From the sequence record NC_048173.1: DNA of 64,000 nt. The stretch is one strand, 5' to 3'. Below, piece by piece: positions 15,239 to 32,713 of the stretch. The notes beneath the pieces are model-generated. The model was given only the letters and a program-made list of their open reading frames with translations. It ran no database searches and had not been told where the DNA came from. Positions within the stretch are counted from its first letter, which is position 1. Each line of letters begins with the position of its first letter. The position numbers and the translations under genes are program-made.

Positions 15239-17026
15239 ATGGTAGAATTTCACGACGAAAAGAAAAACGCTAACACTTCCTCTGCAGACAATAACGCTGC
15301 AACGGGCAACGTGTCTGGCTTCTCTGTTGGCACCGCTAACGAGATGAACATGGCCTTTGAGTGGAGCTCTGTAAACTCGCAGGCTGGCAAGTTCGTAGAA
15401 GTGATTAAAGAAGCCGCCAAAGAAAACCAGTATCTGGCGAACTTCCAGGTCGGTACCGTTGATGCGGTAACTGGCGAATTCGGTTCTGCGGCATACGTCG
15501 CTGGTGAACTGCGTGGCATCCCGCTGTTCGGTATCGTGTTCTTCGAGAAGGGCCTGTCCCTGCGTCTGGTGGTAAACAATAATCAGGAAGATTACTACTC
15601 TATCGCTTCCCTGATTAACAAAGACGTTATCGCCACTGTTGCGAAAACGCTGAAAACTACCCACAGCCTGTCTCAGGACCCGCGCTTCATCAGCATCAAC
15701 ACCATCCCTGATCTGGACCTGGCTCTGACCCGTGAGCGTGCTCTGTCCATCATGGGCCAGATGATGACCAGCATCTTCGGTCGTGCTTCCGGTATTCTGG
15801 GCAAACTCGTCATCACCAAAAATGACAAGTTCATCGCTCAGGTTGGCGGCATCGGCGAAGGCGCGGTTCTGGATGTGAACGGTCACGCACAACGTGCTGA
15901 CTTCGGCATCAAACTGTCTCACGTTCCGCTGCAGCAGAACACTACCCCGACTCTGATGTCAGGTACCAATGCTCAGCAGTACCCGAACTGTGCGGCTGCT
16001 GGTTACGCTAACCTGCGCTACACCGGTCTGGTGAAGAACGCAGACGGCAGCATCAAAGACATGCGTCAGATTTCCCCGGAGCTGGTTATCAGCCTGATGG
16101 ACTCCTCTACGCTGACTGCGAACGCACCGTTTGAGCGTCAGATTCTGATGCTGGCAGTGGCTGCGAAAACTGCAGCAATGGGTGGCTGGATGGACTTCAT
16201 CAAGAACTCCCTGGACGGTAAGACGCGTAAAATCTCTGCACTGGCTCAGAACGTGAACTGGGGCAAAGACGTGTCTAACACCGACTGGAAAGCGATGGAC
16301 AAATCCGTCGAAGCAGCTGAGCGCTTCCTGCGTGAGTTCTGCTACGAAACCGCTGGTCTGGTAGTTGAGCACCGTGCAGGTAACGGCATCGGTGGTCTGA
16401 TTGGTCTGATTGCAGAAGTTGCACAGAACAAGCAGCACGCGCTGGAAACTCTGCTGGCTCTGCTGGACAACATGTTCCCGGTTGTTGAAGGTAACAAGTT
16501 CTCCGACGGCCTGCGTATTGCGTTCGGTGGCCCGACTGTAACTCTGTCTGCATCCCACATCGTCTCCGGTGTTGTACCGACCGTGGCAGGTGTGTACCGT
16601 GGTTCTAACGGCATGCGTTCATACTCCGATATGGACCTGCTGCGCACTACCACTGCGCTGGGCGACGACCGTGCTGAAGTGCTGAAATACTTCCGTGCTC
16701 AGTCGTACAAACATCGTAACATGCAGCCTAAGCAGCAGCGTATCTACCTGGCTCAGCTGGCTAACAGCCTGTTCTCTGGCAACGATCCGATTCCGACCGG
16801 TGAAGGTGTTCAGATTTCCATCAACACCACCTTCGCGAAGTTCCTGTACGAAGCGGTTGATGCGTGTGGCCTGCTGCAGCTGACCGGTGTGAACGCAATG
16901 TCTGTTGCGGATTCCGTACCGTTCTACAACAACACTGGCGACCTGTTCGTAATGTCTGGTGTTGGTGGCGTGTCTACCAACAACGCGTTCGACTTCGCTC
17001 AGCAGTCTGGCTATTTCAACATGTAA
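15239..17026 (+). CDS. chmA: Chimallin, major phage nuclear shell protein
   Basis: 595 aa; segments DVNGHAQRADFGIKLS and AAAGYANLRY resemble chimallin; aromatic C-terminal tail; sits directly upstream of nvRNAP beta'; strong codon bias. Confidence 0.85.
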   Translation: MVEFHDEKKNANTSSADNNAATGNVSGFSVGTANEMNMAFEWSSVNSQAGKFVEVIKEAAKENQYLANFQVGTVDAVTGEFGSAAYVAGELRGIPLFGIVFFEKGLSLRLVVNNNQEDYYSIASLINKDVIATVAKTLKTTHSLSQDPRFISINTIPDLDLALTRERALSIMGQMMTSIFGRASGILGKLVITKNDKFIAQVGGIGEGAVLDVNGHAQRADFGIKLSHVPLQQNTTPTLMSGTNAQQYPNCAAAGYANLRYTGLVKNADGSIKDMRQISPELVISLMDSSTLTANAPFERQILMLAVAAKTAAMGGWMDFIKNSLDGKTRKISALAQNVNWGKDVSNTDWKAMDKSVEAAERFLREFCYETAGLVVEHRAGNGIGGLIGLIAEVAQNKQHALETLLALLDNMFPVVEGNKFSDGLRIAFGGPTVTLSASHIVSGVVPTVAGVYRGSNGMRSYSDMDLLRTTTALGDDRAEVLKYFRAQSYKHRNMQPKQQRIYLAQLANSLFSGNDPIPTGEGVQISINTTFAKFLYEAVDACGLLQLTGVNAMSVADSVPFYNNTGDLFVMSGVGGVSTNNAFDFAQQSGYFNM

Positions 17027-22352: not shown

Positions 22353-23039
22353 ATGTCGTTTAACCACAAGTTTCTTAAAGACAAAACTCTTCTGCCGAAA
22401 ACCAAACCAGACGCACGCGGCCAGCAAAAATCCATGTCTATTGAGCCGAACATGTTCAATGGCGAATGCGAAGGTTTGACCTTCAAATACTTCTTCGGTA
22501 AAGGCGAAGGCATTTACCCATCCATGAAGTACGCAACCCTGCGTGCGATTTGTGATGCGCTGGAAGATGCCCTGCGCAACAAAGAAGCAAGCAGCCTCGA
22601 GTTCGAAATCACCAACAGCCAGAACAAACCCGCTGCCATGATTGTGGTCGGCCGCGGCGAAGATCTGATCCCGTTCATTAAGCTGGGCGGCGATGTTAAC
22701 GGACAAAAGAAAATGGCCGGCTTCACCTGGTACGCAGACAAAGGTGTTCGTCTGTTGCGTAAAGGTCAGCCGGTGCCGGATCTGGAAATCCATGAGCGTA
22801 TTGCGCGTACCTTCGTGAAAGAATTTAACGTCTTCCTCGAAGCGCTGCGTGATGTGTATAACCCGCGTGATTGGAACGCCAACGGGGGTGGTCAGCAGTC
22901 TAGCCGTGGTCAGTATGGTGGTGGCGGTCAGGGTGGTGGTCAACGTGGTGGCCAGTATCAGGGCGGTGGTAACCAAGGCGGCGGTAACGGCGGCGGCTCT
23001 ATGGCATCAGCGACGAACGAATTTGACGAAATGTTCTAA
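22353..23039 (+). CDS. chmC: ChmC-like nucleus-associated nucleic-acid-binding protein (phiKZ gp67/Imp6 position)
   Basis: Beta-rich core plus G/Q/N-rich tail and acidic tip NEFDEMF; two genes upstream of PicA. Confidence 0.65.
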   Translation: MSFNHKFLKDKTLLPKTKPDARGQQKSMSIEPNMFNGECEGLTFKYFFGKGEGIYPSMKYATLRAICDALEDALRNKEASSLEFEITNSQNKPAAMIVVGRGEDLIPFIKLGGDVNGQKKMAGFTWYADKGVRLLRKGQPVPDLEIHERIARTFVKEFNVFLEALRDVYNPRDWNANGGGQQSSRGQYGGGGQGGGQRGGQYQGGGNQGGGNGGGSMASATNEFDEMF

Positions 23040-23133: not shown

Positions 23134-24774
23134 GTGAACATTGAGAAGATTCGCGAAAGTGTAGTGATTAGCCACAATGGTGAAACCATTACTTTCAATA
23201 ACGTGCCGCACATCAACCGGAAGAAGAACACAGTTAAGATTCGCATGGACGATGAAGGGGATTTCCTTTCCCGTGACCAACTGCTGTTCCTCGAACTGAA
23301 TCGTCTTTGGGGCACTTTCTCGGACAAAGAGATTGCCGAAGTTTGGGAGATTTATCAGAACGTACAACTGCTAGTCACTGAACCGGATGAAGTACGCTTT
23401 AACGTATTGCCTGACATGTTGCGTCGTCTGGTAGAGATTCATTCTGTCGACCGCATCATTGCGTTGTACCCTCAGCATCAGGTGTGGATTCCGAAGAAGC
23501 TCGAAAATAACTTCGACAACATTTCGCCGAACTACACTGAAGCCATGACGTATCTGGTCTCTGACTATTATAACCTCATGGTGTTTACGCTGGCACTGAA
23601 ACCATTGATTCCGGTCTTCGCCGCAATCGGTGCGTATCCTCCTGTGAAAATGAACTCACAGTCTGCCCGTCGCAAAATCGTGACCTTAACCAACGATTGT
23701 TTCGAAATCCTGCTGACCTCTAAACTGGGCAATCAGCCGGCGATTCAGAAACTCCGCGACTCATTACCACACACCATCGTCAAGATTCAGAAAGAAGCGG
23801 GAGCGCAAAACTCTAATACGCCGTCCCTGACTCTGATTGCGGTTGTGGAAGGTTATGGGTTGGACGCGTTGGAAGAATACATTACCGCTTTCACGGTGGT
23901 GAATATTCTGGCACTGCAACCGGTAGGCGCGGATTTCAAAGAAGGTGTGATGGATGAGAACTCCATCGTAAGCCGCATCTTCTATGGCATTCGTCCCGAA
24001 GTATTGAACGGCTTTGCCGATAAGATGTCCGCTCACAACGTGACTGAGAAACCGCACGCCTCCACCATGAAACTTAATGGTGAGCGTGGCAAGACCTCAG
24101 TTATCGATACGGTGAATGCACGCTCCACTGCGCCTATTAAGGAAGCAGAACGTACCGGGTTTTATTTCACCGAGTACCGTAAGGCGCTGAAACGTATTGA
24201 TGCAGATATTCCACCTGCTCGCTGTAAGCTGCACATCGACGGGATTGTCGAGCACCACCCGCGTCCATTCTCAGAATTGCACGAATGGCTGGTTGCAGTA
24301 GTATTGCACCGGCATGCGCACCGCGGGACGTATAAAGATGTTGACATGCAAAGTTACATGCATGGCATGGGGATTGCACAGGCTATCTGGGCAAGCTATG
24401 GATTCCATTCGGCTGCAGCACTGCTAAGCTGCTCGGCGCTACCGGGTCGCGATGGTTTGGAATATCCGTTCCTGCCAATCGATGCGAGTATCAAAGAAAA
24501 GTCGGAAATATATTATCCTCAAGCATACCGTGCCCATAAAGGTCAGGAAATCATCAGTCCACTGCGTGAATCTGTCATGCTGTTGATTCGTGATTACATC
24601 AACCCGTTTAGTTTCCATTTGAAAACCTCACCAGAGGTCGCAGCATTACTTGGCGTAGAACCCGAAGTGAAGGGGTATATTCCGGGTAAGAACTTGCAGA
24701 TGGAACTGGCAGAAATGCTGCTTATCCAGGCCAGACAGAAGCACCGTGAAATGCATCCGTTGGCCGCTGAATAA
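23134..24774 (+). CDS. Non-virion RNAP promoter-specificity subunit (phiKZ gp68-like)
   Basis: 546 aa helical protein, GTG start with GAGGAG RBS; position between ChmC and PicA. Confidence 0.7.
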   Translation: MNIEKIRESVVISHNGETITFNNVPHINRKKNTVKIRMDDEGDFLSRDQLLFLELNRLWGTFSDKEIAEVWEIYQNVQLLVTEPDEVRFNVLPDMLRRLVEIHSVDRIIALYPQHQVWIPKKLENNFDNISPNYTEAMTYLVSDYYNLMVFTLALKPLIPVFAAIGAYPPVKMNSQSARRKIVTLTNDCFEILLTSKLGNQPAIQKLRDSLPHTIVKIQKEAGAQNSNTPSLTLIAVVEGYGLDALEEYITAFTVVNILALQPVGADFKEGVMDENSIVSRIFYGIRPEVLNGFADKMSAHNVTEKPHASTMKLNGERGKTSVIDTVNARSTAPIKEAERTGFYFTEYRKALKRIDADIPPARCKLHIDGIVEHHPRPFSELHEWLVAVVLHRHAHRGTYKDVDMQSYMHGMGIAQAIWASYGFHSAAALLSCSALPGRDGLEYPFLPIDASIKEKSEIYYPQAYRAHKGQEIISPLRESVMLLIRDYINPFSFHLKTSPEVAALLGVEPEVKGYIPGKNLQMELAEMLLIQARQKHREMHPLAAE

Positions 24775-24813: not shown

Positions 24814-26535
24814 ATGAAACTGCTGCAACTTCAACTGTATCCGGTCTACGAAATCCCAGAACAGATTCGTCGCCGTATTGCGTTCAACGCCGGTACGGAA
24901 GATTTGACCAAGCTGAGCGATGTGATTGTTCAGAATGGTTCGAGCGCCACCAGTGCGTTTGACTACGGCGAAGCGATGGGGAAAATCGTAGGCTTTGACC
25001 CGCTGCCGGGTAGCTTTGAAACACCGGTGCTGGATATCTCCGGCCAGAGCAATGTGGTCACCCCATTCCGTTTCGAGCAACGCAGCCGTATCTACAACTT
25101 CGTGGCCGTTGTGGTAGTTAACCCGATTAACGAAACTCGCTCACAAGAGATTCGTTATATCCTGACCGGTTACACCTCAGAAGCTGACCCGACGTTGGCG
25201 AGTCTGCTGCCAGATGACATGGTGTTGTACATCAACGACATCTATGGCGTACGTCTGAGCTATAAGTACGACTCACTGGGTAACCGTTATGTTGACCCGA
25301 ACTCGTTCCAGATGGTTGACAACTATGTGCTGTCCAACACGCTGGTTACGTCGCAGGGAACTGAATTAACGCTTGACCCGATTGCGCTGACTAAGGCAGC
25401 CAAGACGGTAAGTAATCTGGATGTGAATGTGGGGGCAGGTGAAGAGCTGCAGTTCAACGTCACCTCCGATCAGGTTCTCGGCCCGTCATTGCAATCAGAA
25501 GCACAACTGCTGACTGCACAACTGACCCGTCCTGAATCGTTCATCGGTGCGATGTCCACCGGGTATCTGAACTCGCTGCTGAATGAGCAAGAGTCCAACT
25601 CCCTGTCCGGCATCAATGCGTTCTTTGATAATGGCACGCTGTCACTGGAAGGTGAGATGCGCCGCCTGGGTGTGGTGAAGTCGTATAAGAACCACAACTT
25701 TGCCAACGCCCTGCGTACGGCGCTATCCCGCCAGAACTTTGTGCAGGATGCGTACCGTCAGTCACAGGATGCCAAGTTCCGTTTAGGTGACCTGCGTTCC
25801 GTGCTGTTTAACCCGCAAGACCTGAACCGCATGTTGCAGGACTCACTGAGTACGGCAATGCGTAACATGTCTCTCGGCATCGACAAAACGGACAGCTGGA
25901 CCAACATGCGCGGCATCGGTACTGATGCATCACTGATTGCCTACGATGTGGGTATGCGTATGGGTCAGGTTATGGCGAAGAACCTGATTAACGGGATTCG
26001 TCTGACCTTTGATAACCGCATGGCGAACTTTGATACGCAGCCGCAGTTGGCTGTGGTACCAGACTCCGCAGAGTCCGTGAGTGAAGGGGGTATCCCGGCA
26101 CTGATGGCTCGTAACTTCATGCGTGAAATGATGCAGACCTTTATTCAGGCTACGCGTCACAACGCTGTTCGCTGCAAGATGGTGGTTATCTCACGTCTGG
26201 GTCAGGTGACCCGTGTGGAAATCACACCAGACGGTGAGGCAGTCACCGAGTATTACACCTTCGCGTCGTTCATGTCATCCCGTATGCATATCGGCCTGAC
26301 GTACGACAACACGTACAACAACACCGTGGCTAAGAACACCAGTACGTTGTTCTCCACTATCCAGCACGGCTTTGATGAGTATACTCGTCGCGATTCCTCG
26401 AACGCGGTGATGGTCTCAATGTCGGCTATGTCGTCACCGTCTAACGGGTTTACGATTCCGGACACTCCGGTTTCCCAGCCCGCTTCTAGCGGGGACTTCT
26501 CGTTCGGCAATGACGTTACCGGATTCAAACTTTAA
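24814..26535 (+). CDS. picA: PicA/Imp1 phage-nucleus protein import factor (phiKZ gp69-like)
   Basis: 573 aa, GAGGAG RBS; conserved position after gp68-like gene. Confidence 0.7.
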   Translation: MKLLQLQLYPVYEIPEQIRRRIAFNAGTEDLTKLSDVIVQNGSSATSAFDYGEAMGKIVGFDPLPGSFETPVLDISGQSNVVTPFRFEQRSRIYNFVAVVVVNPINETRSQEIRYILTGYTSEADPTLASLLPDDMVLYINDIYGVRLSYKYDSLGNRYVDPNSFQMVDNYVLSNTLVTSQGTELTLDPIALTKAAKTVSNLDVNVGAGEELQFNVTSDQVLGPSLQSEAQLLTAQLTRPESFIGAMSTGYLNSLLNEQESNSLSGINAFFDNGTLSLEGEMRRLGVVKSYKNHNFANALRTALSRQNFVQDAYRQSQDAKFRLGDLRSVLFNPQDLNRMLQDSLSTAMRNMSLGIDKTDSWTNMRGIGTDASLIAYDVGMRMGQVMAKNLINGIRLTFDNRMANFDTQPQLAVVPDSAESVSEGGIPALMARNFMREMMQTFIQATRHNAVRCKMVVISRLGQVTRVEITPDGEAVTEYYTFASFMSSRMHIGLTYDNTYNNTVAKNTSTLFSTIQHGFDEYTRRDSSNAVMVSMSAMSSPSNGFTIPDTPVSQPASSGDFSFGNDVTGFKL

Positions 26536-26546
26536 AGGATATCTCG

Positions 26547-27965
26547 ATGAGCAAGCTGAACATTATTGATTACTACCGCGCCCAGTTGGACTCACTGGGT
26601 TTTGGCGATAAAGATGCGTTCTTGTATCACAAGGACGAAGGGCAACTGACTGACCCGGTGACATTTAAGTACGCCGGCGAAACACGTCAGATGGTACTGC
26701 CGACGTACCAGATGATTAAAGCGGGCTTAGTGGATGAAGTGGGCAACGAATGCCACGCTTTCCATCCGCTGTGTGAATCGGTCATGACCGGCGAATCAGG
26801 GACGATTCGCTTTCTGAAACAAGCCATCAAAAATCAGCTGTACGTGAAAGGTATCTCCTTTATTACCTACATGCTGAAAGCGCTGGCCGAAGGGAAGTCT
26901 TCTCGCTCTGCCACCTTTAAGAAGTTTGTGGCGGCAATGACTGAAGGCGTGAAAGATCCGAAGATTGATGATAAGCTGCTGCGTAGCTGGACGAACGTGG
27001 CAACGTACATCAAAGACCGGATGGATAAGAAAACTCGCCTGATGCTCAGCATTCAGCCCGACCAGAAAATCGACGGGGTGAAATACCTGCGTGCGGCGAA
27101 CTATAAGCATGCATTCAGTGAAGAGCAGGATGACGGTACGGCAACGTACTTCGGTGTGCGGCTGGAACGTAAGCAGGACAAAGTGATTATTCACAACCTG
27201 CTGACCACCGTGTTCGGTTGGTATCCAGAAGAGATGGGGTCGAATGACCAGCGAGCGTACTATGGGTCATTGATTCGTGGTTGGGCAGAGTTCGTGTTGA
27301 AGTTCAATGCCCATGCGAAAGGTCTGAAGGACATCGTGCCGGAATACGAACTGCTGAACGATGCGTGGTTGCCAGAACTGGACAACCTCAGTGAATACGA
27401 CGGTAAGATTCAAACCTTACCGTACAACACCGGCAGTCGCGACTCCGAAGTGGAAACCACCAAGCGTGATTTCCGGGTTGGTGGGCAGCAGACTTATAAT
27501 GAGCCAGCTGCGCAAACGGTTACAGAAATTCGTCGGACTGAAAACGGTCTGATTGACCCACTGTCACTGTTGTCACCGGCCACTGCCCCGCAGTCGGGTA
27601 ACGTGTTCATTAATGGTACCCGTCAGGTTGACCTGTCGCAGTACACTCCGCTCGAACAGAAACTGATTAAAGAAGGCCGTACGCATGCACAGCCCTCTAA
27701 AATCGCCGCTATCCCATTGTCACAAGCTTTGGGCGGTGGACATGTCTCTCGCCAGCAGGGTAGTGCAGCCGACTTCTTCGGTAGCAACAGCGGTAACGTA
27801 TTCGCCACCACCACCAGTAACAATAACCCGTTCGCTGGTAACGTAGGCAATCCGTTTACCTCATCTGCAAACAGTAATCCGTTTGCAGGTGGTAATACCA
27901 ACAACAATCCATTCGGCGGTTCTACTGGCGGCAACGACGGTAGTCTGTTCAGCGGTATGTTGTAA
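26547..27965 (+). CDS. Conserved phiKZ gp70-like protein with N/G/F low-complexity tail (4x NPF)
   Basis: 472 aa, AAGGA RBS; position after PicA. Confidence 0.7.
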   Translation: MSKLNIIDYYRAQLDSLGFGDKDAFLYHKDEGQLTDPVTFKYAGETRQMVLPTYQMIKAGLVDEVGNECHAFHPLCESVMTGESGTIRFLKQAIKNQLYVKGISFITYMLKALAEGKSSRSATFKKFVAAMTEGVKDPKIDDKLLRSWTNVATYIKDRMDKKTRLMLSIQPDQKIDGVKYLRAANYKHAFSEEQDDGTATYFGVRLERKQDKVIIHNLLTTVFGWYPEEMGSNDQRAYYGSLIRGWAEFVLKFNAHAKGLKDIVPEYELLNDAWLPELDNLSEYDGKIQTLPYNTGSRDSEVETTKRDFRVGGQQTYNEPAAQTVTEIRRTENGLIDPLSLLSPATAPQSGNVFINGTRQVDLSQYTPLEQKLIKEGRTHAQPSKIAAIPLSQALGGGHVSRQQGSAADFFGSNSGNVFATTTSNNNPFAGNVGNPFTSSANSNPFAGGNTNNNPFGGSTGGNDGSLFSGML

Positions 27966-27967
27966 GC

Positions 27968-28005
27968 AAAAAATAAATAAGGGGCTAACTACCCCTTATT
28001 TTTTT
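27968..28005. terminator. Bidirectional terminator (ATAAGGGG/CCCCTTAT)
   Basis: A and T tracts flank the stem between convergent genes. Confidence 0.85.
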
Positions 28006-28324
28006 AAACAACGGCGGAGTCCAGAATGGATGCCACGACACCGATGTCCGGAATCAGTAAGGTTTCCATGTCAGGGGTGAATTCCATCGGGTTGCGGATG
28101 TTGTTTAAAAGCATCGTTGGAAAGATAAGTTCGCTGGGAATATCGACTAAGCTGCAGTACGCATAGAAGCTATGCATCTCCGGATACGAATAACGCGGGT
28201 CTACTGCCCTTGCCTTCGTGCTCGGATGATTACGCAGATAGTCAAGGTGGTCAATGATGAGTTGGCGTTCAATGGTACTAAGCGCTGGTATCGCCGCCTC
28301 GTATGTCACAAAGTTATCAAGCAC
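28004..28324 (-). CDS. Probable LysM-type baseplate protein (T4 gp53/P2 gpX-like)
   Basis: 106 aa, AGGAGG RBS; LIFPTMLLNNIRNP...LLIP fits the LysM tail motif. Confidence 0.55.
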   Translation of the reverse strand: MLDNFVTYEAAIPALSTIERQLIIDHLDYLRNHPSTKARAVDPRYSYPEMHSFYAYCSLVDIPSELIFPTMLLNNIRNPMEFTPDMETLLIPDIGVVASILDSAVV

Positions 28325-28391: not shown

Positions 28392-30605
28392 ATGCAATCC
28401 TATACCGAGTTAAAGAGCACCCACGCAGACCGTGAGGCGGCTGTCGATATGATTTCAGGCTCGCGTGCAGCAATGCAAGGCGGTCATATGAAATCGGCAG
28501 TGCCGGTGGATAACCCACATCACACCCTGCATTTTACGGGTGCGGACACTGAGTACGAGAAGTATGTGTTTAACCACGTCGTAGAAGACCAAGGTGAAGT
28601 CTACCAGTACAATTACAATGGTCGTTTTCTGCGCGCCATCTTTACCCGTACCGCCTGTCGTAGTGACGCAACACCGCTGCAGCGCGCAATCTTTTTCCGT
28701 CGGTCGGCATTAGGTGATGGCGGGCGTCCCGTTATCGACCTGATTGAAACCACTGGTTACACCGACCACGACCACGTCTTTACCTCACCACAAAAGGAAA
28801 CGCCGAAACTCCAGCGCCTTTTGCGTGGAGAGACCAACATTCTGGACTTAGGGGATAACCTCACCGAACTGAACTGTCAGAAAGATGGGGAGTTCGCAGA
28901 TGGGGTGAATCTGTTAACGGTACCGGTATCGCATCCTGAGAACATTGAAGATGCGTACTTTATCTCCAAGACCGCAGCGGCAATGATGCACGGTTACGGC
29001 TATCGTCGCATTACCGTGGTGTTGCGTGATGGGGATACCCTGTTGGACATCATGGGATACCGCACCGCTGATGGGCGTTGGGTGCCGAAATACTTCCCAG
29101 AGATTGGCGAAGCGATTCCTAACAGTGGGCTGGTTATCGCCAAACGTCTGTACGATCCGTTGTACGCCGCTATCGACATGTCATCCGGTGAACTGCAGCA
29201 CCCGTCACCGTTCTTTGACCGCTGTGAATACGTGGATGCGGACCCAGAGTACGTAGCGAACCCAACCGAAGAAAACGGGTCTCGCGTCATTGACATTAAA
29301 GTGTGGCGTAACGATGCCATGGTGAAGAACGGGGTCAATAACATCCGCTGTACTGAAGAGAACAAGCGTCTGCTTGATGAATACGCACTGGGCCTGAAAG
29401 ATTACTACACGTCTATTCTGCGTTTCTACTTCTCAGTAAAAGAAGATGTGATTTGGTCACCGAAAGCCAGTCTGCTGATTCGTACAGCACTGGCGTCTGA
29501 CTGTCATGAAGTGTTCCATGAGTTCCAGCGTGATATCCGTGATGAACTGACGAAGTCTGTCCGTCGTCATGAGAACAAGCAGGACTACGTGGACAGCAAC
29601 ATGAAGAAACTTCAGGAAGCGCCGGAGCGTAACCTGAAGGAAGCAGTCACCAACTACACCATCGAAATCGTGGTGCGTTACCCTATCCCGGTCACCGTGT
29701 CGTCAAAGATTACTGACCGTTCGGGTACTAAGGGTATCGTGGGTGCCGTAATGGATGATGAGCTGATGCCTCTGGATGAGTTCGGTCAGCGTATCCACTG
29801 TCTGCGTAGTGCGAACGCCGTTATGCGCCGTTCAACCTATTCGGCGCCGTACCACATCTTCTGGTCGGCAGCATCTGAGCAGTTAAAGATGCGCATGAAA
29901 CCAATGCTGGAGGAAAATCGGGTAGACGATGCGTGGGCTGAGCTGCTCGAGTATCTGAACTGCTATAATGAGAAGTGGTCGCGTGCCATTGCTCTGACGC
30001 ACCAGACAACCGAGGAACGGATTAAACTGTTCGAACAGATTTACGAAACCAGTATCCGTATCCACCTGCCACATGAGCTGCCGAAATCCGGGATAGATAT
30101 ATGTGATAGCCTTGGTAGATTCACACCGAAGCGCACCAAACTGTTAATGACCGACTATAACGGGAAGAAGCAGTGGACGAAGAACACGTTTTACGTGGGC
30201 TACGTAGAAACCTTACGTCTGGACAAAACCGGTCGTGAGTTCTCCTCAATGTCATCCATGTACACAAACTACTTGGGTGCAATTGATGCCAGCGGCGCCG
30301 GTGCCGGGAACTACCCGATGAAGTACAAGGCCATTAAGTTCGGCGGGGAGTCTGAACGTCGACTGCTCGAAGGCTACCGTAAAGGCACCTTCGATGAGAT
30401 TCACAACCGTGCTAACTGTCCGGATGTGCATCGTGCCGTGGTTCGTGGGCTGTATGAATCCCACACACCGACTTCACCGGGGTATCTGATTGATCGTAAA
30501 CAGTTCCCGATGGGTTATTCGCAGATTGATAAACTGGTGGACAACATTCACCGCTGCGAAGGTTTCCGTTTAGTTAAACCACTTCGCGAGGATGTAGCTG
30601 CATGA
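28392..30605 (+). CDS. rpoB: Non-virion RNA polymerase beta C-terminal subunit (phiKZ gp71-73-like)
   Basis: SKITDRSGTKG (cf. GDK...RHGxKG) and KFGGESE (cf. RFGEME). Confidence 0.88.
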   Translation: MQSYTELKSTHADREAAVDMISGSRAAMQGGHMKSAVPVDNPHHTLHFTGADTEYEKYVFNHVVEDQGEVYQYNYNGRFLRAIFTRTACRSDATPLQRAIFFRRSALGDGGRPVIDLIETTGYTDHDHVFTSPQKETPKLQRLLRGETNILDLGDNLTELNCQKDGEFADGVNLLTVPVSHPENIEDAYFISKTAAAMMHGYGYRRITVVLRDGDTLLDIMGYRTADGRWVPKYFPEIGEAIPNSGLVIAKRLYDPLYAAIDMSSGELQHPSPFFDRCEYVDADPEYVANPTEENGSRVIDIKVWRNDAMVKNGVNNIRCTEENKRLLDEYALGLKDYYTSILRFYFSVKEDVIWSPKASLLIRTALASDCHEVFHEFQRDIRDELTKSVRRHENKQDYVDSNMKKLQEAPERNLKEAVTNYTIEIVVRYPIPVTVSSKITDRSGTKGIVGAVMDDELMPLDEFGQRIHCLRSANAVMRRSTYSAPYHIFWSAASEQLKMRMKPMLEENRVDDAWAELLEYLNCYNEKWSRAIALTHQTTEERIKLFEQIYETSIRIHLPHELPKSGIDICDSLGRFTPKRTKLLMTDYNGKKQWTKNTFYVGYVETLRLDKTGREFSSMSSMYTNYLGAIDASGAGAGNYPMKYKAIKFGGESERRLLEGYRKGTFDEIHNRANCPDVHRAVVRGLYESHTPTSPGYLIDRKQFPMGYSQIDKLVDNIHRCEGFRLVKPLREDVAA

Positions 30606-32713
30606 AAAAGGGCTTAGCCGTACATGTGCGGGACCTGCGTAACCTGACCAAGGACCAAGTCTGGAGACTGAACGGGCGTTACGATGTAACGTTCGATGAC
30701 GGCGTGACCCTCCCCATGGGGGGTCGCCACATTAAACTAAGCTGGCCGTACTGGGCGTTCTCACGCCTGTACGATTTTGTACCCACCCCTAGCACCCTCA
30801 CGTACCAACGTGAAGAGGTGTCCACGGACAAGAAGCATTTGGAACTGCTGGGGGTAATGTTCCGTTTGGCCAAACATCATGGCATCCCTATCGCCGATAT
30901 CCGTTATGTGTTATCCGAACACGGGTACACGGATGCGTACAACGGTTCTGTCGAGAACCTGATTGCGTACATCTCAACGGTTGACGTGGATACCTTCTTA
31001 GACATCTGGCGCCACCCCCGTATGGACGTGGTGCGCGATTTGGCCCGTCGTTATCCGGAAGGGTACGACGAAGAAGGCAATGACATGGTGGAAGTGGCGT
31101 ATCAGGAAATCGAGATGATTTTCGATGACCCCGCGATGCGCTACAACATGGCGGTGATGTCGGTTCGTGACCACACCGTCAAAGGCGATACCATCCTGCA
31201 GGCATTTGTCCGCGGGAAGCTGTCAGAGATTGACTCACGGGTATTCAGTAATCAGGTATGGTCCGGACTCTTTACCGGTCTGGACGATGCCGGTCGTGTG
31301 AAGGAATCGTGCTCGACCTCGCGTTCGCATCTGTATAACACAGATAACATCGCCGATGCTGAATACACCAGTCGTAAATTCCAGTTGGTATCCAACGTCC
31401 TGATGCGTTATACGCCGGGGGACTGTGGAACCCATCACCATCATCGTAAGACCTTTACGGATACCCGCTCACAAGAGCTGATATTCAATGCGATGGCGGG
31501 GATGTACTTTAAACTGGAAGGACATCAAGAAGGCCCGTGGATACGCTTTAATAAAGGCGAGTTCAAGCAGTACGTGAACAAACCACTGGTCTTCCGCTCA
31601 GCCATGACCTGTAAACTGCTGGCGAAGCAGTCTATCTGTTCTATCTGCATGGGCGATATGGTCGACAACATGTCTGATGACACTGCGCCGGGTCACTTGG
31701 CTCTGACTTCCATTTCGGAGAAAGGGTCACAGGGGATTCTGTCCACCAAGCACTTGGACTTCCTGCGCAAAGTGTTGCAGCTCGTGTTTACCTCGACAAT
31801 GGAGCGTTTCATTACGCTGTTCAAGCACAGCACCGTGAAAGCGGTGCGACTGCAGAACAAACCGTTGCAGGGTAAATGGGATGACTATGAACTGACAATT
31901 CAGGATAAGATCCACTCCGAGCTTATTCAGATTGCCTACCATAGTTCGTTGTCTGAACTGGATGAAACGGCCTTACCTGACATCAATGCGTTGACTTTTG
32001 TACGCATCGATAAAGAAGGGAATGTCCTCGATGAGGAGTCCATCAACGTGCGAATGGGGGTGTGCGGGAACTTCTCCCCAGACTTCCTGAAGCACTATCT
32101 GCGCAACAAAGACAAGCTGCGTATCGTTGGCAAATCTGTACATATCCCTCTCGCCGGTTGGAACGTGAACCGTCCTCTGTTAGTTTATACAAATCGCTCA
32201 GAAAGTATGGCGGAGTTTGTATCAGCAATGGAAGCGAAGATTCGTTCCGCGTCGGTCGATGGTGAAGACCGTTTAGTGAAGTCGAAGAAGATGGAAGGCA
32301 ACCAGCGTTCTGCTTTCTTCAAGAACAAAAACGGTGTGGTAAAATCCATCTCTTTGGTGGACCAGCGTGGTGCTACAGAACAGCAATGTACCGATGCCAT
32401 GTTTGACATGTATCAGTTCATTGACCGTAAACTGAAAGGTATCCCGATGGCGCACATCGGTATTACGTTAGCCGTCTCCCGTGTCGAATCCCCAACCAAC
32501 TCCTTCCCGGCAGTTGGCTTCGATGCCGAAGACTACAACACGCAATCCGGTAAGCGTTTCTTAGACCACAACACCATCATGGGTCGTCGCTCTGCAGCCC
32601 CAATGCTTTTCTATGAGGGTCAACAGGACTACCTCGACAACATCGGCTTTTGGACTGACAGAGTTCGCCCGGCGTCGTTATACGACGGGGCGTTCTTTGC
32701 AGTTAAGAAATAA
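30602..32713 (+). CDS. rpoC: Non-virion RNA polymerase beta' C-terminal subunit (phiKZ gp74-like)
   Basis: Bridge-helix-like NIADAEYTSRKF, DCGT, C..C..C Zn site, trigger loop ISEKGSQGILSTKH. Confidence 0.88.
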   Translation: MKKGLAVHVRDLRNLTKDQVWRLNGRYDVTFDDGVTLPMGGRHIKLSWPYWAFSRLYDFVPTPSTLTYQREEVSTDKKHLELLGVMFRLAKHHGIPIADIRYVLSEHGYTDAYNGSVENLIAYISTVDVDTFLDIWRHPRMDVVRDLARRYPEGYDEEGNDMVEVAYQEIEMIFDDPAMRYNMAVMSVRDHTVKGDTILQAFVRGKLSEIDSRVFSNQVWSGLFTGLDDAGRVKESCSTSRSHLYNTDNIADAEYTSRKFQLVSNVLMRYTPGDCGTHHHHRKTFTDTRSQELIFNAMAGMYFKLEGHQEGPWIRFNKGEFKQYVNKPLVFRSAMTCKLLAKQSICSICMGDMVDNMSDDTAPGHLALTSISEKGSQGILSTKHLDFLRKVLQLVFTSTMERFITLFKHSTVKAVRLQNKPLQGKWDDYELTIQDKIHSELIQIAYHSSLSELDETALPDINALTFVRIDKEGNVLDEESINVRMGVCGNFSPDFLKHYLRNKDKLRIVGKSVHIPLAGWNVNRPLLVYTNRSESMAEFVSAMEAKIRSASVDGEDRLVKSKKMEGNQRSAFFKNKNGVVKSISLVDQRGATEQQCTDAMFDMYQFIDRKLKGIPMAHIGITLAVSRVESPTNSFPAVGFDAEDYNTQSGKRFLDHNTIMGRRSAAPMLFYEGQQDYLDNIGFWTDRVRPASLYDGAFFAVKK

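Follow-up and report, generated by a model that had tools for sequence, protein, structure and literature searches.

The window analysed here, 64,000 nucleotides (nt) of DNA, has the same sequence as bases 1-64000 of record MK514282.1, Erwinia phage Derbicus. One of its genes, gp34 (DERBICUS_34), is annotated as hypothetical and lies beside the gene for the homolog of the phage-nucleus import factor PicA/Imp1. It encodes a protein of 472 amino acids (aa) with a folded N-terminal domain and an almost uncharged, predicted disordered C-terminal tail, in which phenylalanines recur at regular intervals. Our new observation is that the flavour of this tail, that is, the type of residue that recurs as a putative sticker between polar spacers, is common to the gp34 tail, the C-terminus of PicA, the N-tail of chimallin (ChmA), a protein of the nuclear shell, and a linker of the protein gp76, and that it switches together in these four proteins between clades. 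No description of the gp34-family tail or of its match to PicA and chimallin was found in the searchable literature.

The tail comprises the last 67 residues of gp34 and ends in LFSGML. Its last 65 residues contain 14 Asn, 8 Phe and 4 Pro, all four prolines lie inside Asn-Pro-Phe (NPF) motifs, and only three charged residues occur in the last 80. Downstream of an FF pair, successive phenylalanines lie 8, 10, 8, 9, 10 and 12 residues apart, and just two of the eight phenylalanines are followed by Gly. An earlier note on this DNA had described such an Asn/Gly/Phe-rich tail with four NPF copies. The tail is indeed present, the 64 residues quoted there corresponding to nt 27771-27962; the start given there, 27700, lies slightly upstream of the tail, inside the linker. 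The four NPF copies exceed chance, since none of 200,000 shuffles, whether of the whole gp34 or of the tail alone, contained four or more. An origin of the copies as a DNA repeat was rejected, because Tandem Repeats Finder finds none and the codons differ between the copies (AAC or AAT, CCG or CCA, TTC or TTT).

The earlier note had also taken the synonymous variation as a sign of selection at the protein level, and the comparison with related phages bears this out. Between the gp34 tail and that of Cronobacter phage CR5, the proportions of synonymous and non-synonymous differences (pS and pN) were 0.72 and 0.16, giving an omega (dN/dS) of about 0.07, with dS saturated. All 8 phenylalanines are kept in CR5, compared with 37 of the 59 other tail positions; in phage Phobos, 7 of 8 are kept, compared with 28 of 59. 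Since Phe is kept above the other positions and omega is low, these data support protein-level selection on Phe, with stickers conserved above spacers.

An AlphaFold2 model of gp34, built on a 28-sequence alignment, predicts a globular N-terminal domain, which is the conserved core of the family, and gives residues 396-472 a predicted local distance difference test (pLDDT) score below 50, i.e., no confident structure. In full, the disordered C-terminal part covers about 175 residues. The modelled N-domain is an orphan alpha/beta fold: searches of Pfam, of the PDB (by sequence and with Foldseek) and of named viral models yielded no relative, and the matches in BFVD were uncharacterised jumbo-phage proteins only, so that no function can be inferred from the fold. 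Within the variable linker between domain and tail, residues ~362-395 (27630-27731) form a semi-conserved stretch of two parts, a predicted short helix (pLDDT about 65) and a Ser-Leu..Ala-Leu-Gly-like patch just upstream of the tail. A similar patch stands at the extreme end of several Arg/Asp-type tails of relatives.

gp34 matches phrog_3520 at E = 2e-130, and phiKZ gp70 and Goslar gp173 belong to the same PHROG; the E values reported for the family pair are 2e-130 and 4e-122. BLASTP against phiKZ gp70 gave E = 2e-6, tblastn found gp34 homologs in 101 phage records, and record notes equate PhiPA3 gp064 and 201phi2-1 gp126 with phiKZ gp70. By these criteria, gp34 is the ortholog of phiKZ gp70, PhiPA3 gp64 and Goslar gp173, a core protein of chimalliviruses. 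These relatives share with gp34 the homologous N-domain, the gene position and the combination of a folded domain with a low-complexity tail. They differ from it in tail flavour, NPF being found on the Derbicus side.

A family profile run against 1.84 billion representatives yielded 1302 clusters at E up to 1e-10, and the tails of 149 diverse members were surveyed. An uncharged polar tail with spaced hydrophobic or aromatic residues (at least 60% Gly/Ser/Asn/Gln/Thr/Pro/Ala and at most 12% charged residues) was present in 93 of the 149, an Arg/Asp-rich tail in 39, and an intermediate or other one in 17. This survey, which the earlier note had proposed, found a low-complexity tail in almost all homologs, not its absence in most. 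The flavours differ by clade and include NPF, xLFG, FG, LLGG, Met/Gln/Pro, Trp/Tyr and Arg/Asp. The NPF dialect is rare; it was seen in the clade of Derbicus, CR5 and Phobos and in P0048 and P0049, two metagenomic lineages far removed from it. The relatives P0022, P0025, P0046, P0061 and P0180 have genuine repeats of FG or xLFG. The tails of phiKZ, PhiPA3 and RAY are rich in Met/Gln/Pro, that of 201phi2-1 in Gln/Pro/Tyr and that of SPN3US in Leu/Gly, and the Goslar tail is short. Since Leu, Met, Trp/Tyr or Arg/Asp take the place of Phe in relatives, the FG-like look emphasized in the earlier note is one dialect, among several, of a wider feature. Four database proteins, from the Salmonella phages SPFM10, SPFM14, SPFM12 and SPFM20 (P0038-P0040 and P0042), look like shuffled mosaics of short family pieces, P0039 matching the profile over 13 distinct segments; mis-assembly or permutation of the records behind them is probable.

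The PicA/Imp1 homolog of Derbicus is gp33. It falls in phrog_3141 together with phiKZ gp69, PhiPA3 gp63 and Goslar gp174, and SPN3US gp235, which is listed as a gp63 homolog (PMC10643120), is 42% identical to it. Beyond the part alignable to SPN3US PicA, gp33 has a low-complexity C-terminal tail of the Phe type. To measure the agreement in flavour, we compared the last ~40 residues of the PicA homolog with the gp34-family tail within each phage, using annotated phages, IMG/VR loci and ten metagenomic contigs. In Derbicus, the NPF copies and the LFSGML end of gp34 stand opposite a PicA C-terminus that contains GDFSFG and ends in GFKL, and both proteins are of the Phe type in the whole Derbicus clade. 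Both are of the Leu/Gly type in Wellington, L014 and SPN3US (an LLGG-type tail beside a Gly/Leu tail of PicA), and in ChrisDB, Huxley and Caitlin the two proteins even have literal 5-mers in common (GNSLL, NSLLD, GNSIL). A clade with FG-type tails in both proteins sits nested inside the Leu-type relatives, with N-domains at least 70% identical to that of SPN3US. Arg/Asp runs occur in both proteins of pVa-21, Xoo-sp14 and the P0050 lineage, eight NPF in the gp34-family tail accompany two in PicA in the P0048 lineage, and xMFG/xLFG repeats accompany LFG repeats of PicA in the P0046 and P0047 lineages.

Over 28 lineages, the composition cosine was 0.614 for matched and 0.312 for mismatched pairs, and none of 200,000 permutations, which ignore kinship, reached the observed value. 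The dominant sticker was common to both proteins in 17 of the 28. On a tree of the N-domains, the Phe type arises at least twice inside the Leu-type clade, PicA switching each time, and the Arg/Asp type is found in at least two places; about four to six independent concerted switches can be counted.

The tail of ChmC served as an internal control. ChmC (phiKZ gp67/Imp6) resembles gp34 in its place in the same gene block, in its association with the shell and in having a disordered C-terminal region, which is Asn/Gly-rich and drives the formation of condensates with RNA in vitro (PMC11077065). Unlike the gp34 tail, it is composed of Gly/Asn/Gln/Tyr with an acidic end and has no Phe/Leu stickers. 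In Derbicus, the ChmC-like protein is gp31, whose Gly/Gln/Asn/Tyr-rich tail has an acidic aromatic end (..EFDEMF), a type that is constant across clades. In the same 17 loci, the cosine was 0.586 for matched and 0.585 for mismatched pairs (p = 0.48), i.e., there was no co-variation with the gp34-family tail, and the guanine-plus-cytosine (GC) content overlapped among the flavours (0.45-0.52). We therefore rejected GC-driven or lineage-wide compositional drift as the cause of the co-variation. The co-variation itself points to a functional link between the gp34 family and PicA.

Many PicA homologs end in Phe/Leu-Lys-Phe/Leu, as in GFKL of Derbicus (26521-26532), NFKL of Wellington and LKF or FKF of metagenomic lineages, and SPN3US chimallin also ends in NFKL. 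This ending may be a separate C-terminal docking motif that these proteins have in common.

The same agreement extends to chimallin, the N-tail of which we delimited as in 201phi2-1 ChmA. The Derbicus N-tail has one Phe-type sticker, GFSVG, and N-tails track the local flavour in phages of the Phe, Leu/Gly, FG and Arg/Asp types: the stickers are Leu/Gly or Ile/Leu-Gly in SPN3US, phiEaH2 and ChrisDB, SFGG and AFGG in contigs of the FG clade, and the N-tails of pVa-21 and Xoo-sp14 are rich in Arg/Asp/Glu/Lys, their chimallins having Arg-rich C-ends as well. In 201phi2-1, the N-tail (residues 1-47) precedes the docking segment NTS (residues 48-61), is structurally unresolved, and can be deleted with assembly and incorporation left intact. 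Because it is dispensable for the lattice, the N-tail is free for another role.

When all 526 open reading frames (ORFs) of the Derbicus record that encode 80 aa or more were scanned piece by piece, gp76 was the single protein besides gp34 with at least two NPF motifs. Four NPF and one IFT lie in its Asn/Gly/Ser internal linker (residues ~105-175), between two folded parts, and its gene is located directly 3' of a gene that encodes a non-virion RNA polymerase (nvRNAP) subunit. The gp76 homologs carry Leu/Gly stickers at the corresponding place in the protein in SPN3US, Wellington, phiEaH2, SPAsTU and ChrisDB, and weakly in Huxley.

We favour like-with-like cohesion because it is the simplest account of four proteins changing dialect together. 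According to this proposal, the Phe stickers of gp34, mostly NPF and 8-12 residues apart, and the stickers of the same type on the PicA C-terminal tail, the chimallin N-tail and the gp76 linker would adhere to each other by many weak contacts. Single stickers would cover the chimallin lattice densely, like a carpet, to which gp34, PicA and gp76 would cling with their multivalent tails, as they would to one another, and so gather in hubs at the nuclear shell. Judging from the sequences, we give such a cohesive multivalent network an even chance of being correct. Self-association is known for both classes of disordered sequence seen here, uncharged spacers with aromatic or aliphatic stickers and mixed-charge runs of Arg and Asp. 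Carboxysome scaffolds such as CsoS2 and CcmM likewise use short repeated stickers in disordered chains to tie cargo or accessory proteins to a self-assembling protein shell; they differ in acting inside the shell during assembly and are not homologous, whereas the partners proposed for gp34 include PicA and the chimallin N-tail.

The published behaviour of the family is partly in line with this proposal. PhiPA3 gp64 localizes to the nuclear shell and co-purifies with gp63 (PicA) in ChmB pull-downs (PMC10643120); it is expressed early and was found by ChmA/RecA proximity labelling (PMC10643120; PMC11077065). Transposon insertions are nearly absent from PHIKZ070, as they are from the essential genes beside it. 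The legend of Figure 1 in PMC11077065 places PhiPA3 gp64 both among the nvRNAP subunits and among the shell-associated proteins; by synteny, the nvRNAP subunit is gp62 (phiKZ gp68-like), and the entry looks like a slip.

Several points weigh against a cohesive network at the shell. We infer the mutual contact of the tail segments from their sequences, and with it cohesion in place of docking to a folded pocket and the resulting tethering of the import factor to the shell. The permutation tests on flavour matching ignore phylogeny, ChmA was sampled in about 11 phages and gp76 in about 7, and PicA has no low-complexity tail in RAY, SA002, SNUABM_48, Eowyn, Goslar and the P0131 lineage. phiKZ gp70 and Goslar gp173 have been described as nuclear proteins, not as shell proteins. 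With the proteins made in E. coli, gp67 of phiKZ co-precipitated with Imp1 and gp70 did not; an assay of this kind could miss contacts that are weak and multivalent, and phiKZ has one of the weaker flavour matches between PicA and gp70 (rank 10 of 28). Finally, two antisense oligomers against PHIKZ070 produced no scored phenotype, whereas the knock-down of PicA was scored +++.

The main rival explanation is that the stickers are short linear motifs that dock to one folded pocket, located for example in the chimallin core, the gp34 N-domain or ChmB, and that the four proteins co-vary through competing for this site or sharing it. Concerted switching would fit this equally well, the literal 5-mers common to both proteins in some clades suggest a specificity beyond composition, and chimallin is known to bind extended peptides of its neighbours (NTS, CTS1, CTS2). 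Repeated NPF in a disordered polar region is also found in ligands of EH domains, such as the NPF repeats of Rabenosyn-5 (PF16601). The match of PF16601 to the gp34 tail is insignificant, however (9.3 bits against a threshold of 27.6, E = 2), and most gp34 relatives, unlike these ligands, lack NPF. No candidate reader was identified, no search having been aimed at an EH-like one. Moreover, a single pocket would need its specificity changed from Phe to Leu, Met and Arg/Asp, and the flavours observed all belong to the self-associating classes. Taking both sides together, we consider a folded pocket unlikely, while ranking it first among the alternatives to cohesion.

Slightly less probable still is a strict analogy with the nucleoporins, in which the tails, as a cohesive and selective FG-like phase inside or along the import opening, would act as the permeability filter of the phage nucleus. 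The earlier note had compared the tail with cohesive FG nucleoporins; our comparison took their GLFG type, such as the Nup98 family. The comparison is justified with respect to the disordered, charge-depleted Asn/Ser/Thr/Gly spacer with regularly placed Phe, and gp34, like the nucleoporins, would be anchored at the boundary of a nucleus-like compartment, beside the import machinery. Some relatives have true FG or xLFG repeats, the gene adjoins that of PicA and co-varies with the PicA tail, and the PhiPA3 ortholog is found at the shell. The comparison breaks down in motif, length and family match: the repeat unit is NPF instead of FG, GLFG or FxFG, the tail, of 67 aa and with 8 stickers, has about a tenth of the length of FG domains, which span hundreds of residues, and no match of Nucleoporin_FG to it was found even at E up to 10. 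For these reasons, the gp34 tail is not a member of the FG-nucleoporin family; by analogy, it would work partly like a cohesive FG domain from outside that family. FG nucleoporins are bound by mobile transport receptors and form the permeability barrier, whereas we know of no mobile transport receptor in the phage-nucleus system. Many gp34 relatives exchange Phe for Leu, Met or Arg/Asp. By published accounts, it is surfaces of Imp1 itself that license import, and the missing phenotype of the PHIKZ070 knock-down, set beside that of PicA, also speaks against a filter.

Alternatively, the tail, alone or with another part of gp34, might be a targeting signal that brings gp34 into or onto the nucleus, the PicA tail being a competing or self-masking mimic. 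A truncated construct of Goslar gp173, nicknamed 'Taileboi', has served as a tag to bring a foreign domain into the nucleus, and phiKZ gp70 is among the listed nuclear proteins. The published wording is silent on which part of gp173 suffices, and our literature search found no paper explaining the construct. A targeting signal would leave the stickers of the ChmA N-tail and the gp76 linker unexplained, and the reported selectivity of import rests on folded surfaces of the cargo; we regard this explanation as improbable. That the tail has no specific function and is a flexible spacer or entropic bristle drifting with a lineage-wide mutational bias would agree with its high variability between clades, and is very hard to reconcile with Phe being kept while the spacers vary (omega about 0.07), with all tail prolines lying inside NPF, and with a similar GC content across flavours and a ChmC tail that is out of step in the same genomes.

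The neighbours of gp34, from gp31 to gp37, form a conserved chimallivirus block. The position of gp34 is that of the phrog_3520 family, with the PicA/Imp1 gene on one side and, on the other, a small reverse-strand gene and then the nvRNAP beta genes. The statements of the earlier note that the gene lies beside PicA and near ChmC were thus correct on both counts. Direct BLASTP of gp33 against phiKZ gp69 and of gp31 against phiKZ gp67 gave no significant match in either case; we assign these homologies because of shared PHROG profiles (for gp31 and phiKZ gp67, phrog_3284) and SPN3US intermediates. A gene of 88-115 aa is found at the position of gp35 in nearly every related locus examined, and one transposon data set shows 0 insertions in PHIKZ070.01, the counterpart in phiKZ. 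An antisense ORF of 103 aa (27623-27934, reverse strand) mirrors the low-complexity coding strand; it is unsupported as a gene and was rejected as an artefact.

Table 1 Features of the gp34 locus and of the proteins compared with it; positions are those of the window unless stated otherwise
Feature	Position	Strand	Description
Chimallin (ChmA) homolog	15239..17026	+	major shell protein; phrog_8316 / phrog_4795 'nuclear shell protein'
ChmA N-tail	15239..15373	+	first ~45 aa; one Phe-type sticker
gp31	22353..23039	+	ChmC/Imp6-like, phrog_3284
gp32	23134..24774	+	homolog of phiKZ gp68, nvRNAP subunit
gp33	24814..26535	+	PicA/Imp1 homolog, phrog_3141
gp33 C-terminal tail	26389..26532	+	about aa 526-573; low complexity, Phe-type
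gp34 (DERBICUS_34)	26547..27965	+	472 aa, annotated as hypothetical; phrog_3520
gp34 N-terminal domain	26547..27431	+	residues 1-295; predicted globular (AlphaFold2 pLDDT about 90)
gp34 linker	27432..27761	+	residues 296-405; weakly conserved
gp34 tail	27762..27962	+	residues 406-472; predicted disordered, uncharged, 8 Phe in an Asn/Gly/Ser/Thr matrix
NPF copy 1	27825..27833	+	aa 427-429
NPF copy 2	27849..27857	+	aa 435-437
NPF copy 3	27876..27884	+	aa 444-446
NPF copy 4	27906..27914	+	aa 454-456
Terminator-like hairpin	27975..28001	.	bidirectional; between convergent gp34 and gp35
gp35	28004..28324	-	small conserved gene, phrog_3455, convergent with gp34
gp36 and gp37	28392..32713	+	nvRNAP beta-type subunits; downstream synteny marker
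gp76	72985-74535 of MK514282.1 (outside the window)		516 aa, phrog_8185; four NPF

Taken as a whole, the interpretation offered in the earlier note is partly supported. The matching of stickers provides a handle, readable from sequence, on how the chimallin lattice is crossed and how PicA/Imp1 is retained at the shell. It predicts which segments touch and which proteins should be sought in import hubs, and it suggests what the chimallin N-tail and the gp70 family may do. Going one step further, the sticker code of the chimallin N-tail, PicA, the gp70 family and gp76-type proteins might build, on the nuclear shell, a thin and nucleoporin-like cohesive layer or hub that is itself the site of import, and perhaps of mRNA export, and adds selectivity to it. 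We put this forward tentatively, as a doubtful extension of the cohesive network; if it were true, the layer would be a convergent, protein-shell counterpart of the disordered phase of the nuclear pore.

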